DNA of 63,647 nt, the filler included, from Reticulomyxa filosa (Eukaryota > Protista > Foraminifera): the NCBI GenBank assembly GCA_000512085.1. It is 21 parts of 21 records of this genome, joined end to end, with 100 filler letters (N's around TTAATTAATTAA, not from the genome) between each part and the next. Parts side by side here need not be neighbours in the genome. Positions count along the whole stretch, not along the records: positions 14,556 to 21,814 come from ASPP01023234.1; 20 more parts are not named here. One strand, written 5' to 3'. Below are positions 14,743 to 21,420 of the stretch, one piece after another. Positions within the stretch are counted from its first letter, which is position 1. Every line of letters starts with the position of its first letter. The position numbers and the translations under genes are program-made. The notes under the pieces were generated by a model that saw only the letters and a list, made by a program, of their open reading frames with translations, made no database searches and was not told where the DNA came from.

Positions 14743-15347
14743 TTATGATTTCTTTTGATTTAAGATCATGGATACAATGAGTCCGTACAAACCCAAGGCG
14801 TTGGCAAATGCTTGAATAAGCATAGTTGCAACGAACAATGAAGGCTGTTGCCCGACTGCTCTTAATCCAGACTCGCCTACATCTCCTATTGCATAACCTG
14901 AGGCTGTTTTATTTGTTATTGTTCCCCGCCATCCATGTGAAGGCCACAATTTAATGTGTAACCAATATGTTATATTTATTTGTTTTTTGAAACGAAGAAA
15001 AATATAGGCAGATAAGGAATACCTAAAGAAGAGAAACCACAAGATAAACCAGCAGATAATTGAGCAAATGCGATAAATGGTGTGTAACTGTCCCAGTTTT
15101 TGGAGTTTTGCAAAGCAATAATACTTGTAATCAAACCGTAAATTCCCAGCACACCAGCCATGACCACAGGAATCATATTCCTCATCACTGCGCCTGGATT
15201 CAATACACCCATACTTGCCAGTGCTACACCTGCTTTTGCAATCCCATAGGCTGACCCCAAACACGACAGAGATATTGAAAAGGTAATTCCCAAATACCCA
15301 AACATGGCATATGCCACTGAGGGAAATTCATAAGTCGCTGACGACAT
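14743..15347 (-). CDS. V-type ATPase V0 proteolipid subunit c (16 kDa, c/c'-like) lacking the helix-4 Glu
   Basis: Exons 15347-15023 and 14903-14743 (GT-AG intron 15022-14904). Four TMs with CLGSAYGIAKAG, IPVVMAGVLGIYGLI, ASGYAIG.VG, QQPSLFV...FANALGLYGLIV. Confidence 0.93.
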
Positions 15348-15587: not shown

Positions 15588-17726
15588 TTAGTGATTTGGA
15601 GCAATTGATTGTTGCATCTGAGTATTATTGATGACAGATTGGGATCCCCATGCTTTAGAACAACAGCCACAAAAAACTTTGCGAGTTTGCTGAAAAAGCC
15701 ACTTTCGGAATGTTTCCGATTTCATGCGATCGATCTCCCGTTCACCAGGGGCCAAGCTTTCGTCAACATCCACTATAAATTATGCAAAAAAGAAAAAAAA
15801 ATTTGCATGTAACAATTATCTATATACATGTATATAAGAAATACCAAAAGCAGCAATTCTTCCATAGTTTCCACACCAAAGAATATCAGGAGAAAAGGGA
15901 TCATGAGTCCAAGAGACAAGGAACTGTTTCCTGGAATGTTGAGTCATAGGGGTCGACAGTTGCCAGTCAAAGTAGAGTTTTTTGGACTCGACACGACGTT
16001 TCCACACGCTCCAAACCCAAAAGCAAAAGTTGTAAGTGACGAACGCGATAATAAACACAATGGCACATGCCTCATCAAACCAATCGTGTTCGAACCAGTC
16101 TATTGACGTGACCATCAGCAATGCGGATTGAACGACCACACAACAAATGAACAGAAACGATACGATGATATATTTATGTAGCAATGTCAAATAAGGTACC
16201 TATCAATTTCATTGTTTTTTAAACGCATAAAGTCATTTAAAAAAATATTGCTTTGAATATAAAAAAAAACAAAACGTTAGGCAATTGATTGGAAATGACA
16301 AATTGAAAAGCGACGGCGGTCAAAAGCAGAGTGATGGCGAGATTGAGTCGATCACCGCGAGTGGAGGGCTGCGGCAAAGCAAAGCAAGTGAGCGATAACA
16401 GCGTGATGAAAAAGATATAAAAGAGCAAGTTCCAAAAGTAAATGGAATATCTGCGTCTCATTTTGAAGCGCATTTGAAGCAAATGGTATTGCGTGGTGCT
16501 CCGTGATTGGCCGGGGTCACTCCACGCAAACTCGATTCGACTTGTGTGGAATTCCCATTCATCCAACACACTATACGTAGGATCCACTCGCATAAAGTCG
16601 CTCGGTCGTCGTCGTTGCTGTTGTCGATTCGCATCATCACTACTTTTCGTCTTCTCTTCTTGCCCACTCAACGTCGACCTCATTTCATTCGTTCGAAGCT
16701 CGGGTGCAAACGTCGCCAACTTTGCCCCTTGCGATGCACGCATCACTATTGTAAAGTCTTGACAGCTATATTAATACAAATACAGAATAAATAAATAAAT
16801 AAAAAAAAAAAATACATATATATATATATATATGTATATGTATTTTATTTATTTACTTATGTTTATATTGATTTATGTATATGAAAAACATAAATCAAAC
16901 TTGAGCTTAACTCAACTGGAAAGTTCTCCAACTCCAATTCTTCAGCAAATGTCATGTCCGCTTCCATTTTGCATCGTGCAAAATAGGCCCGATTTGGATC
17001 GAATCCCGCCAGCTTTTCGTCAAAGTCTTTCAAGGTGTCCACCTTAAACAGCGCGCCATCGCTAAATGGTACGTCCTCCAATGAGTGGATCTCCACCACA
17101 TTTAAGAATTCATACTTTGGAGTAAATGATGGTATCCAATGCTTTTTCTCTTTTTCTTTTACTTTCTCTTTATCCTTCTTATCTTTCTCCTCTTTATCGT
17201 TGTCGTGGTCCTTTTCTTTTTCTTTTTCTTTCTCTTTCTCCTTCTCCTTCTCCGTATTCTTGTCCTTGTCCTTAACTTGATTGTACACTATGTCCCTTTT
17301 CTTCTTTTTGCTCGCTTGAAAGGCCAAGTAAGACTTGTATTCTTCCAATGACAACAGTGTGTTCATATATATGTGAAATCGACAGCGAAATGTCTCGCGC
17401 ACGTTATCTATGTCACTTATTCGTTTTATCTTTATCCCCACGTATACTCGTCGAGGTTGCTTTGGATCCGCAAAATATAATGTCTCTTCTGTGTTTCTGT
17501 CTTTCCATTTTTTTTTTTCAACGCAAAATTCATATTTATTTCACTCCTTTCCTCTCCTGTTCCCTTCTCACTACTCTTGCTTTTTTAAAAATAGTTTTTT
17601 TTTTTAGCTGTTGACAACGGTTTCTGAAATCACAGCTTGCTTTAATAAATTAGACCATTGAAATTCGTCTTCAAGTTCTTGTTTTTGGGCTGGCTCATCA
17701 ACACCAACCAACACTTTCTCGGTCAT
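15588..17726 (-). CDS. Pentameric ligand-gated ion channel (Cys-less/Pro-loop receptor); multi-exon, start uncertain
   Basis: ECD: VYVGIKIKRISDIDNVRETFRCRF, Pro-loop LENFPVD|CQDF, EW, pre-M1 RR..YFWNL. M2 GDRLNLAITLLLTAVAFQFVIS, M2-M3 LPNVPYLTLL, then M3, a short loop and M4. Confidence 0.9.
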
Positions 17727-17949: not shown

Positions 17950-20900
17950 TTATACAACTTGCACTAAACAGATAATGTGATACACTTTCCATTGGACAGA
18001 CATAAGTAAAATGAACTCGTTGCAATTTGTATTGTTACTGTTAGTTCTTTTGCCATTGCTGCAATGGACGATTCTGTGATGTAAATCCCCCCCCCCCGAT
18101 AAAGAAGCAACAGGAATAATGTTAGAATATGGCATATTGTAAAATAAAAAAAGAAGCGACAAGAAGATACGCAACTGATTGCCCAGGTTGTGGCACAGGA
18201 GGAGGACCAGACGAGCCATTTTGCTGACCACCCAGAGGACGAGCAGCTTGCAAAGGCCTTGCACTTTGAACGGGCGATTTTGATTGTGTATTTTGAACGG
18301 GTGATTTTGATTGTGCATTTTGAACAGGCGATTTTGATTGTGCACTTTGAACAGGTGATTTGGATTGAGGCGCAGGTGGTGGTCCAGAGCCATATTTTTC
18401 TTGTTTTTTGCGATAGTATTCATCGTCACTGTCACTATCTTTGTCTTCTTCTTCCTCATTCTTCTGCGGCTTTGATGGTGGCTTTTTGCTGGAAGCAAAG
18501 TTATTTTGGCTTTGAAATTGCTGAGGTGGCCTATTGGTAGAGCTGCCAGTTTGGAAAGAAGAAGGAGGAGGTGGAGGAGGCCCTTCTTCTGTGTCCACCG
18601 TTTTCTCCACTTGCACATAGTTACCCAGTACTTGTTTGACTTGGAAACCTAGTCCTCCAACGTGTTCGGCCACACCAACCACTTGCGATATGTCGCCAAC
18701 CATGGTTTGGTGTGTTTTCTTTTGCAAAGGGTCTGCCGAAGATATGATGTTGGGTTTATTGACGGGCTCCTTTGCGTGGACTCCCAATGCAACTGTAAAG
18801 TCTTTTGCACCACAGATTTGATAGATGCGGTATGGTCTCATGTATTCAAAGATTTTGGGGGTTGTATGCACCATGTCCGTCACAGGCTCAAATCCCCACA
18901 TTAACACACAGCCTTTAACAACCAATACAATATACATTATATGTGTACATATATATATATATATGTATACACATGTACTGCAGAAAGATTGTTTGATGGT
19001 TTATCAAAGCAAACCTAATTTAGTAATAGCAAAGGTACGATCTTCAATACATTCAATTCGAACAATTGGGTCGTCTTTCAATATTTCCACGTGTTTTGGA
19101 ATCCATTGTGTTTCTTCGTTACCATGTCCTAATCGATAATCTGCTCCGACACTAATTTGATATTATATGTCATTCATTACAATGAAATAATATGTACAGA
19201 TATGCACATATGAATATATTGTATTGTAGAATAACCCAAAAGTGAAGACTTCTCCTTGTCTGGACAACAGAGCAGCATGGAAAGGACCAGCGCTCATGTC
19301 GGCTATGGCAGGCATGTTTTCCAAAAACATAGGTTTGGCAGTTTCTGGAATGTCTTGGCCAATGCCCATGCGTCCGTGTTCGTTTATGCCACTTGCGCAA
19401 ACCAGCCCATCGGTGAGCAGAACCAAAGTGTATTGTGTCCCGCATTCCACTTTTGACACACCCAAGTTCTTATCCTCTGTCAACAAACAAATAACAAATT
19501 TGATAATTGATAAGTTTATTTTTTTTAAAAAAAAACAAAAAAAAAACAAACCTTGAACGGAAGGATGAAAATCAACACGGCCAAAAACCTTTTGTTGATT
19601 TTTATCTTCGAATCCGAGCCATGGACCAGGCATTCCCCAGGTGTAGACGTCGACATGAGCGGAGTGCCAAGCCGCAGAATGTGTATTGGAACAAGAAATG
19701 CCGGTGACCCCCAAATTGTTCAAGAACGGTAGTATTTTGGGGGCGTTGACATCGGCGGGCAAATTGGTGAGTTGTTTGGCACCCCACCCAAAGACAGTGG
19801 ATTCCAAAGTCAAGGCCAAGCCGTGACGAGATGAGCATTCCACTTGAACCACTTTTTGCTTTTTCAATGGATGTAACAAGAAAGGTAAGGTGGATTTCGT
19901 GTCTTTGCCCAATCCCAGAGCAGGGGCAAAATTCGCTTCGCCCCAAACTAATGTCCAATCATTGTCAGTCACTCCAAATGCGTGACTACCATCCTTGGCT
20001 GCTGCGATATACACCAGTCGCTTTTGGCTCAATGTTTCATGTCGAAATGGGGATGCTTGATTCGAATGTTGTGGAAACATCTTTTTTAAGTTTTATTTAT
20101 TTCATTTATTTGTTCATTGATTTATTCATTTTTTAAAAAAGAAAGACAACATTGCACTAGCAATTGTTAAAAAAAAAAAAGGCTAAACTCGTGAAGGACG
20201 CGCGTGTCCCCATAGGAAGATAGACGCAGTGTGTTTGCCAGGTTTGAAAGCTTTGTCGAATTTCAGACGTTTTGCTCGCTTCATACCTTGGGCAAACTGT
20301 TGAATGTTGGCTTGCGTTTTCGACGCATCTTCTTCCTTTGTCAGGTCCAATTGCATTTTGGAACCCGATGGCAATATCACACTCGATTGTGTAGGATTTG
20401 CCGCGTTCAATGTACGCGTACTTTTCATTTCGCGTTTTGACACCATTTCTTGACGATTCATCATGCCCTATCATACATAAATACAAACATATATTTTTAT
20501 TATTTGTATATGTATACATACATATGTACACATATTGGTAATTACAAAAAAAAAAAAAAAAAAATAAACTTTTTGACGCATGTTAAGCATTGACTTTGAC
20601 TCGGCCATGGTTTTTAAGTCGTGATAATGCTTGGCTTCTCCAATCATACGCTGACGCATTCTCTCCAATGTATCCACTAAATTCTTAGCTTCGACGTCAT
20701 CTTTCAATTGAAAATGAAAAGGTCTTTCTTGCGAATTTATCTTTTTATATACATATATGTACATAATATTATAATTGATTATTGATACGTATCAAATAAA
20801 ATAAAAAAATAAAAACGTATACGTATTTTTATTTTATTTATTTATTTTTTTTTCTCTCAAATAAAAAAAAAATATTGAATGAAAAACCTGAATAGCTTTT

Positions 20901-21420
20901 TCGTATTGGTCACTCAAAGAAACAAAAATATTGGGCTCCAATAAAGAGATCATATTCAAAGGGAACTGAGACTTATCGTTACTTCGAAAGATTAAGATGC
21001 GATTTTTGACAACGACCATTTGCCTGGATGCCCATTTCAACTTGCCTTTTTTGAAACATTCGGTTTCCAATTCGGCTTTGGCACCAACTCCTATCGCTAC
21101 CTCTTTGAATTTTCCTGCTGGAATGCTGGCCAACAGTTGATGCAATGAGTCGCGGTCTTGCTCACTGTCGCAAAAGAAATGCAATGGCTCTTTGCCATTG
21201 TTGAAAAAAATCATCAATGCATTGTCGTATTTCATATTCGTAAAGACGCACATCACTGATTTAAATGGATACACTGTTGAGTCTTCTTCATGCTGCGCGA
21301 TGTTTATCTCCTGCTTATTGATGTTTATACACACCAACCAACGGTTCTCTTTGTTTGACTTTTGATCATTCGATGTAAAGTAGCCTCCCCACACGAGTAG
21401 ACTTGTGTCCACGTTTTCTG
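17950..21420 (-). CDS. Tandem PH-like domains + RCC1/BLIP-II repeats + Pro/Gln-rich tail; multi-exon, ends uncertain
   Basis: PH-like: KKGKLKWASRQMVVVKNRILIFRS...PFHFQLKDDVEAKNLVDTL. RCC1 repeats: VVQVECSSRHGLALT..VFGWG, VECGTQYTLVLLTDGLVCASGINEHGRMGIG, MSAGPFHAALLSRQGEVFTFG. Confidence 0.85.
18262..18365 (-). repeat. Coding 27-nt tandem repeat (QSKSPVQxA x4)
   Basis: Four near-identical units in the C-terminal exon of the RCC1 protein. Confidence 0.85.

Follow-up and report, generated by a model that had tools for sequence, protein, structure and literature searches.

A V-ATPase c-type proteolipid lacking the ring glutamate in Reticulomyxa filosa, with counterparts in diatoms and a nematode

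The ring glutamate of the V-ATPase (vacuolar-type ATPase) has been thought indispensable in every proteolipid of the complex; a gene encoding an otherwise recognisable c subunit with asparagine in its place poses the question of whether such a protein is a genuine product of the genome and, if so, what it might do. A gene of this kind is found in the foraminifer Reticulomyxa filosa, on the minus strand at positions 14743-15347 of a 63,647 nt stretch of assembly GCA_000512085.1 (21 parts joined end to end with filler between them, the whole of which is referred to here as the window), within the part that comes from ASPP01023234.1. The comparisons described below indicate that it is maintained by selection, and that similar substitutions around the lost carboxylate have arisen at least three times.

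The gene consists of two exons, with an ATG at 15347, a TAA at 14745-14743 and GT..AG splice sites (Table 1). Removal of the intron gives a product of 161 amino acids (aa), which is colinear, with no gaps, with an independent 161 aa protein, P0001. The exons were searched one by one, with P0001 as the full-length query, and were joined for translation, calculation of dN/dS, alignment and tree building. Both match the Pfam family ATP-synt_C above the gathering score, with E-values of 3.6e-13 for exon 1 and 5.4e-14 for exon 2, and both match Citrus, yeast and mammalian V-ATPase c and c' chains of known structure in the PDB: exon 1 hits c and c' chains at E-values of 1e-23 to 1e-16 (best 1.4e-23), and exon 2 hits c chains at values down to 1.7e-14. 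The predicted product is a V-ATPase 16-kDa c proteolipid with two ATP-synt_C hairpins (PF00137, in the duplicated form with four transmembrane helices, TM1 to TM4), and its open reading frame (ORF) and intron are intact, as the initial annotation had described them.

TM4 of this protein reads MLIQAFANALGLYGLIV. HMMER alignments with c and c' chains of known structure put the Asn of MLIQAFANALGLYG opposite the Glu of LIFAE[AV]LGLYG. Position 143, which this Asn occupies, is Glu in all 70 of the canonical sequences aligned, as it is, by construction, in all 320 of the Glu-bearing sequences collected. The codon lies in the context gccaacgcc, which contains no homopolymer. Helix 2 (VVMAGVLGIYG) has no Glu either, Gly65 being found where c''/Vma16 has its own. 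The initial annotation had reported both of these features, together with a new Gln one turn ahead of the Asn and a new Asp in helix 3, and all four were borne out by the alignments. Since neither Gln at position 139 nor Asp at position 116 is present in any of the 320 Glu-bearing c subunits, both residues are far outside normal family variation.

Relative to the 70 Glu-bearing c subunits, the near-invariant positions that have been replaced are T36I and G42A in TM1, V76I in TM2, I116D, D119E and V122L at the end of TM3 and in the following loop, and G134A, M135T, I136M, L139Q, I140A and E143N in TM4. Canonical c subunits are 86-100% invariant at positions 36, 42, 116, 119, 134, 135, 139, 140 and 143, and the replacements as a whole are few and clustered. 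The breadth of the TM4 remodelling (G134A, M135T, L139Q and I140A) and the T36I change had escaped the initial annotation, as had the independent occurrence of similar changes in diatoms and a nematode, described below. Thr135, Gln139 and Asn143 are spaced i, i+4 and i+8, so that TM4 has a stripe of polar residues (T-x3-Q-x3-N) on the face predicted to bear the Glu in canonical subunits, and this stripe runs towards the cytoplasmic loop. The T36I change has a parallel in the T32I change reportedly associated with bafilomycin resistance in Neurospora.

A word search with exon 1 recovered P0001, which is 91% identical to the window protein and shares with it Asn143, Gln139, Asp116 and Ile36; there are no amino acid differences between the two in helices 2 and 4. 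P0001 is an environmental ortholog, encoded on two intronless Joint Genome Institute (JGI) contigs, L001 and L002, each of around 1 kb. The window gene and L001 are 80% identical at the nucleotide level, with 80.8 synonymous versus 14.2 non-synonymous differences: the proportion of differing synonymous sites (pS) is 0.71, which is saturated, the corresponding non-synonymous value (pN) is 0.039, and the dN/dS ratio (omega) is about 0.02. The codon for Asn143 has itself changed synonymously, being AAC in the window and AAT in the ortholog, and all 23 of the coding differences between L001 and L002 are at synonymous third positions. These observations show that the gene is under strong purifying selection, and exclude a read error, a pseudogene and neutral drift. 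Hence the explanation that the locus is a young pseudogene, a neutral copy or the site of a sequencing or assembly error at codon 143 is effectively refuted, the intact ORF and splice sites also counting against it; in its favour, the databases were found to contain no annotated protein for the gene. The initial annotation had considered a sequencing slip unlikely, and had envisaged either a group of relatives sharing the substitution and evolving at a dN/dS below one, or a neutrally evolving pseudogene without orthologs of this type. The first of these is what P0001 represents, and the second is not what was found.

The two contigs encoding P0001 have some features of their own. L001:51-916 and L002:1-866 align without gaps, and the 25 differences between them all fall at L001 54-317, with 318-912 being identical. 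This mosaic suggests assembly chimerism, in which the 3' parts of two variants were merged, or else recent gene conversion, and leaves the argument for selection unaffected. In L002:860-972, an AATAAA motif around 370 nt past the stop codon is followed by approximately 20 A residues and then by unrelated sequence, which resembles a poly(A) tail within a chimeric contig; L001 diverges from the same point. As both contigs are intronless, and L002 has the AATAAA followed by an A-run, they are likely to be cDNA contigs from a metatranscriptome, in which case the ortholog is transcribed. An ORF on the opposite strand of L001 and L002 was considered as an alternative gene, and was rejected on account of several in-frame stop codons.

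Maximum-likelihood trees join the window protein to P0001 with full support. This pair is sister to the Glu-bearing foraminiferal c subunits, comprising Ammonia P0006, Sorites P0007 and environmental relatives, with support of 99/97 when all columns are used, 100/97 when seven trait columns are removed, and 100/99 in an alignment of 55 rows with ten trait columns removed. Over its N-terminal half, the window protein has 73-76% identity with foraminiferal c and 45% with a Ser-bearing diatom clade described below. A phase 1 intron interrupts the Glu-bearing homolog L004, found on a genomic contig, at exactly the codon where the window gene has its own. The sister placement (100/99) and this common intron position show that the gene is a lineage-specific duplicate of an ordinary foraminiferal c gene. 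The stem branch of the Asn-bearing pair is long, at 0.87-1.3 substitutions per site, and the duplication may be either older than the sampled foraminifera or recent and fast-evolving. Glu-bearing, foraminifer-like c genes with the phase 1 intron at this codon are present on genomic contigs at L004:1670-2325 and in P0002, P0004 and P0008; gene callers run through the intron, which results in truncated database 'proteins' of 112-142 aa.

Screening of all the retrieved homologs at the Glu column revealed that the foraminiferal proteins are not the only Glu-less relatives. In Bacillariaceae diatoms, the TM4 of the P0186 cluster reads LFVATILIQVFAS (LIQVFAS). This cluster, defined at 90% identity, contains 55 sequences from transcriptomes and a genome of Pseudo-nitzschia australis, P. 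multiseries and Fragilariopsis kerguelensis, amongst them P0269, P0270 and P0281, and is distinguished by an insert of around 30 residues in the cytoplasmic loop between TM3 and TM4. The nematode Acrobeloides nanus has two paralogs, P0174 and P0285, with LIQAFAS where the canonical sequence is LILIFAE. The nearest relatives of P0174 are VHA-1-type proteins of nematodes, at 66-69% identity, and all the other nematode c subunits retrieved have the Glu. P0174 had been placed near the foraminifera in a quick tree lacking nematodes, but the possibility that it is a protist contaminant was rejected because it nests inside the nematodes (100/100) and has this level of identity to VHA-1-type proteins.

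All three groups resemble one another in replacing the TM4 Glu with a small polar residue, in having Gln at -4 and in having Ala or Val at -3. The diatom paralogs also have Ala-Thr in place of Gly-Met, and P0174 also has I116D; both the diatom and Acrobeloides paralogs differ from the window protein in having Ser, not Asn, and the diatom proteins in their long insert in cytoplasmic loop 2. Position 116 is Ile in the diatom clade, Ser in P0285, and Asp in P0174 and in P0295, a Logan contig that may represent a third Acrobeloides-type paralog. On a rough count, in which the sequences are not independent, Gln139 is present in none of the 320 Glu-bearing sequences and in three of eight Glu-less lineages.

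The tree built with ten trait columns removed puts the Acrobeloides pair within the nematodes (100/100) and the diatom clade with stramenopile c subunits (96/98), and requires at least three changes of Glu state. Approximately unbiased (AU) tests that included lineage-matched canonical sequences rejected the placing of the eight Glu-less rows together in one clade (p = 9.6e-5), and likewise a single clade of the foraminiferal and diatom Glu-less groups (p = 9.4e-4). The groups for these tests were named after the trees had been seen, and earlier AU tests of a single origin, which contained no lineage-matched sequences, gave p-values of 0.35 with the trait columns kept and 0.055 with them removed. 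Given the rejection of a single origin, and the resemblance of each group to the canonical c subunit of its own lineage, the combination of L139Q, I140A/V and E143N/S arose independently at least three times: in a foraminifer, in Bacillariaceae diatoms and in Acrobeloides. Loss of the Glu has thus repeatedly been accompanied by Gln in place of the Leu one turn above and by a smaller residue at -3, and we regard this convergence in three lineages as the most interesting new result of the analysis.

Several other putative c-like proteins lacking the Glu were found singly: P0192 and P0247 have Asn at this position, P0242 (Dysnectes brevis) has Ser, and P0095 and P0232 have Gly. The other four are likewise eukaryotic, and two of them, P0192 and P0247, are extended at the N-terminus by a long Cys-rich stretch.

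The remainder of the protein is well conserved. In the 70 canonical c subunits, 79 columns reach a conservation of 85% or more; the window protein and P0001 both keep 59 of these, including 15 of the 16 in TM2. Both Asn-bearing proteins retain G31, G35, G40, G111, G115, G118, G121 and Q127-Q128-P129, and hence the Gly packing motifs of TM1 and TM3 and loop residues that serve contacts in the ring and with subunit d, and their TM4 still ends in LGLYGLIV. At position 123 the window protein has Arg and P0001 has Lys. An AlphaFold model of P0001 (predicted local distance difference test score, pLDDT, 88.8) has four helices, at residues 11-49, 56-81, 90-127 and 129-158. It matches yeast and mammalian c chains with a template modelling score (TM-score) of 0.87-0.94 and a root mean square deviation (rmsd) of 1.0-1.3 Å, and the top Citrus c chains with a TM-score of 0.86-0.90 and an rmsd of 1.3-1.8 Å; overall the solved c chains, to which it is 43-52% identical, lie around 1.1 Å away. 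Measured as distance from the turn between TM3 and TM4, along the third and fourth helices of this model, Asp116 lies at about the depth of Gln139 and Ala140. Since the packing and loop residues are conserved, incorporation into the ring is plausible. Taken with the clustering of the substitutions, the pattern of change is one of directed remodelling at the ion site that leaves the assembly surfaces in place, and not one of decay.

The protein most closely resembles the 16-kDa c subunit (Vma3, ATP6V0C), the nearest relatives being those of Ammonia and Sorites: it has the same length of 161 aa, two ATP-synt_C hairpins, four transmembrane helices, an essentially unchanged TM2, the Gly motifs, QQP and LGLYGLIV sequences, and an intron position shared with a canonical relative. 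It has the fold and domains of this class but not the Glu that marks it, and differs further through G134A, M135T, L139Q and I140A in TM4, I116D and D119E in TM3, and T36I and G42A in TM1. In being a lineage-specific duplicate of c that may hold a special place in a mixed ring it is like yeast c' (Vma11) and c'' (Vma16), and for exon 1 the score against c' is marginally higher than that against yeast c. However, c' and c'' both keep the essential Glu, E145 and E108 respectively (PMC7541076), and the window protein has neither. It is also unlike c'' (Vma16/ATP6V0B) in having no fifth, extra N-terminal, helix and in having Gly65 at the position of the c'' Glu; exon 1 matches PDB c'' chains at E-values of only 1e-9 to 5e-5, as against 1e-23 for c. 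It is unlike fungal c' (Vma11) both in lacking the Glu and in its origin, which the tree attributes to a separate foraminiferal duplication (100/99). It should be classed as a derivative of c that lacks the Glu, distinct from the c, c' and c'' subunits themselves.

A prokaryotic analogy is offered by the F-type c1 subunit of Acetobacterium woodii (PDB 4BEM), likewise a four-helix proteolipid that has lost a carboxylate site, in which an amide is reportedly found instead. The two are alike by resemblance only: chain 4bem_J matches the P0001 model with a TM-score of 0.72 at around 24% identity, and c1 is a bacterial, Na+-coupled protein with one functional site per four helices, unlike the window protein, which has no canonical site. 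The triplicated c subunit of M. jannaschii is another known system of this kind. Literature searches of incomplete coverage turned up no account of a eukaryotic c subunit that naturally lacks the Glu, which is weak evidence of novelty; the novelty of such a subunit is accordingly provisional.

The interpretation we favour, to which we would give about an even chance, is that the gene encodes a functional Glu-less c paralog that is silent but rotates within the V0 ring. The initial annotation had proposed a proton-silent ring subunit that lowers the H+/ATP ratio, an altered ion selectivity or a non-pumping V0 role; the first of these corresponds to the present reading, which is plausible but has a serious rival in a braking subunit. 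Retention of the four-helix fold, the glycine packing motifs, TM2 and most of the loop residues makes it most likely that the paralog still takes a place in the V0 c-ring. Its TM4 face would there present uncharged Thr135, Gln139 and Asn143, with Asp116 on TM3, and would be expected to carry no proton at the canonical site, because it is the missing carboxylate that carries protons (PMC7541076). Hydrogen bonds from the side-chain amides and hydroxyl to the stator arginine or arginines of subunit a and to the waters of the half-channels might let a Glu-less position pass the a/c interface and make the '0-glu' transition, in the term of Roh et al., cheaper. In each turn such a ring would transport one proton fewer for every copy of the subunit, and might thereby have a lower H+/ATP ratio and sustain a steeper pH gradient.

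There are two precedents for this possibility: the working rotor ring of A. woodii has the stoichiometry c2/3(9):c1(1) (PMC8904574), and duplication with loss of ion ligands or sites is a recognised means of changing the ion/ATP ratio (PMC2359735). The recurrence of the same substitutions raises a broader proposal, which we advance tentatively, that eukaryotes have repeatedly evolved proton-silent 'spacer' proteolipids, in which Asn or Ser stands in for the carboxylate and Gln lies one turn above it, often along with other polar residues on that face, so that the stator arginine could slide past. Such spacers would provide a genetically encoded means of altering the H+/ATP gearing, or the reversibility, of the V-ATPase, and the window gene would be one of at least three inventions of this type; we consider this broader proposal less likely than not.

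A number of observations weigh against a silent but rotating subunit. In yeast, mutating the E145 of c' or the E108 of c'', each present in a single copy, abolishes pumping, and the natural '0-glu' gap in the ring is already rate-limiting (PMC7541076); by this precedent, a Glu-less subunit would be expected to stall the ring and not to regear it. The clade is also a narrow one. Among 5.8 billion clustered proteins, a word search with the C-terminal half of P0001 found only P0001 itself and one Glu-bearing protein, and in an exhaustive search of 1.84 billion representatives no relative came closer than around 56-60% identity, whilst a scan of prokaryotic genome contigs gave no Asn-clade matches, and one of metagenome contigs detected canonical relatives alone, at 54-59% identity. 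The canonical foraminiferal c transcripts come from different samples to P0001, which is uninformative on this point.

The yeast precedent leads most directly to a second interpretation, in which the subunit enters the ring and blocks its rotation, producing a proton-tight V0 that could exert dominant-negative control over acidification or serve a role of V0 alone, such as fusion or scaffolding. The loss of a single ring Glu is sufficient to abolish pumping in yeast, and ATP hydrolysis is unable to drive a 0-glu gap of greater length (PMC7541076). The conserved assembly surfaces and the strong purifying selection are as expected of such a brake. However, loss of the Glu would by itself suffice for this purpose, leaving the three-fold recurrence of L139Q with I140A/V unexplained, and sites free of a carboxylate are reportedly tolerated in other rotor rings, such as those containing A. 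woodii c1. Matthies et al. are said to have described in 2014 just such a site, carboxylate-free and bearing an amide, in a working ring. We consider a brake less likely than a silent but rotating subunit, though a serious rival to it.

Alternatively, the ion site may have been relocated or altered, with Asp116 acting together with Gln139, Asn143 and Thr135 as a displaced site that still binds H+, or else a different cation such as Na+. Known Na+ sites are composed of a carboxylate, Gln and Ser/Thr, and include a residue of TM3 (PMC2359735). The I116D change is present in both orthologs, and is found again alongside Q139 and A140 in P0174 and P0295 of Acrobeloides, whilst the depth of Asp116 in the model would suit such an arrangement. 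Against this, Asp116 is on TM3, the inner-ring helix, and its access to the stator Arg is doubtful. Furthermore, Asp116 is two residues away from the likely equivalent of NtpK Gln110, and hence probably points away from the TM4 pocket. Nor does Asp116 form part of the shared solution, the diatom clade having Ile and P0285 having Ser at this position. As it lies on the inner helix and is absent from these proteins, a relocated site is rated below a brake or V0-only role, and appears improbable.

It is also conceivable, if quite improbable, that the protein has left the V-ATPase altogether, forming its own oligomer or part of another membrane complex, of a channel-like or 'ductin' type. The loss of the defining catalytic residue, the long stem branch and the large loop 2 insert in the diatom counterpart are all compatible with this. 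Yet TM2, the Gly motifs and most residues of the cytoplasmic loops have been kept (Gln127-Gln128-Pro129, and a basic residue at position 123), and the changes gather on the Glu face of TM4 instead of being scattered over the interfaces.

A Glu-less c subunit maintained by selection would imply either that rings run with a silent position, or that cells build V0 sectors that do not rotate. The former would be a form of variable gearing, a long-standing idea reportedly due to Cross and Taiz. The question bears on how extreme pH gradients are attained, on the cost of the '0-glu' step and on the roles of V0 that are independent of pumping. The convergent motif, consisting of Q at -4, a small residue at -3 and N or S at 0, provides a concrete set of mutations for yeast. 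Both foraminifera and diatoms are biomineralisers that need to control vesicle pH, and a Glu-less c subunit is a candidate regulator of that control.

Table 1. Positions of the exons, intron and substituted codons of the Glu-less c gene, counted along the window
Feature	Position	Strand	Description
Exon 1	15023..15347	-	Met1-Leu108 and base 1 of codon 109; TM1, cytoplasmic loop 1, TM2, luminal loop and most of TM3
Intron	14904..15022	-	119 nt, phase 1, GT..AG; separates Leu108 from codon 109
Exon 2	14743..14903	-	Rest of TM3, cytoplasmic loop 2, TM4 and stop codon TAA (14745-14743)
Codon 36, ATT = Ile	15240..15242	-	TM1 motif AYGIAKAG; canonical Thr in 99% of rows
Codon 116, GAT = Asp	14881..14883	-	TM3; canonical Ile or Val (AIG[IV]VGD)
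Codons 134-135, Ala-Thr	14824..14829	-	Canonical Gly-Met; diatom clade also Ala-Thr
Codon 139, CAA = Gln	14812..14814	-	Four residues ahead of Asn143; canonical Leu (318/320)
Codon 143, AAC = Asn	14800..14802	-	Position of the essential TM4 Glu (yeast Vma3 E137)

The surrounding part of the window contains several other coding sequences. The next gene upstream, on the same strand as the c gene, lies at 16237-16746, possibly extending to 17441 and 15816, and has a weak match to Neur_chan_memb (the transmembrane region of Cys-loop ligand-gated channels), which at an E-value of 0.0018 falls short of the cut-off. At 16863-17441 there is an ORF with many Glu-Lys repeats. A tandem repeat of 27 nt, with four copies and 88% matches, is found at 18260-18367, inside an ORF on the minus strand (18122-18937); the repeat encodes SKSPVQ-type units, and the ORF a Pro/Gln-rich protein with no Pfam matches. 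A gene for an RCC1-repeat protein, apparently split by introns, is present at 19163-20080 on the minus strand (E-values of 1.5e-22 for RCC1 and 5e-31 for the RCC1-like domain), and a weak match to a PH domain was detected at 20834-21412, also on the minus strand.

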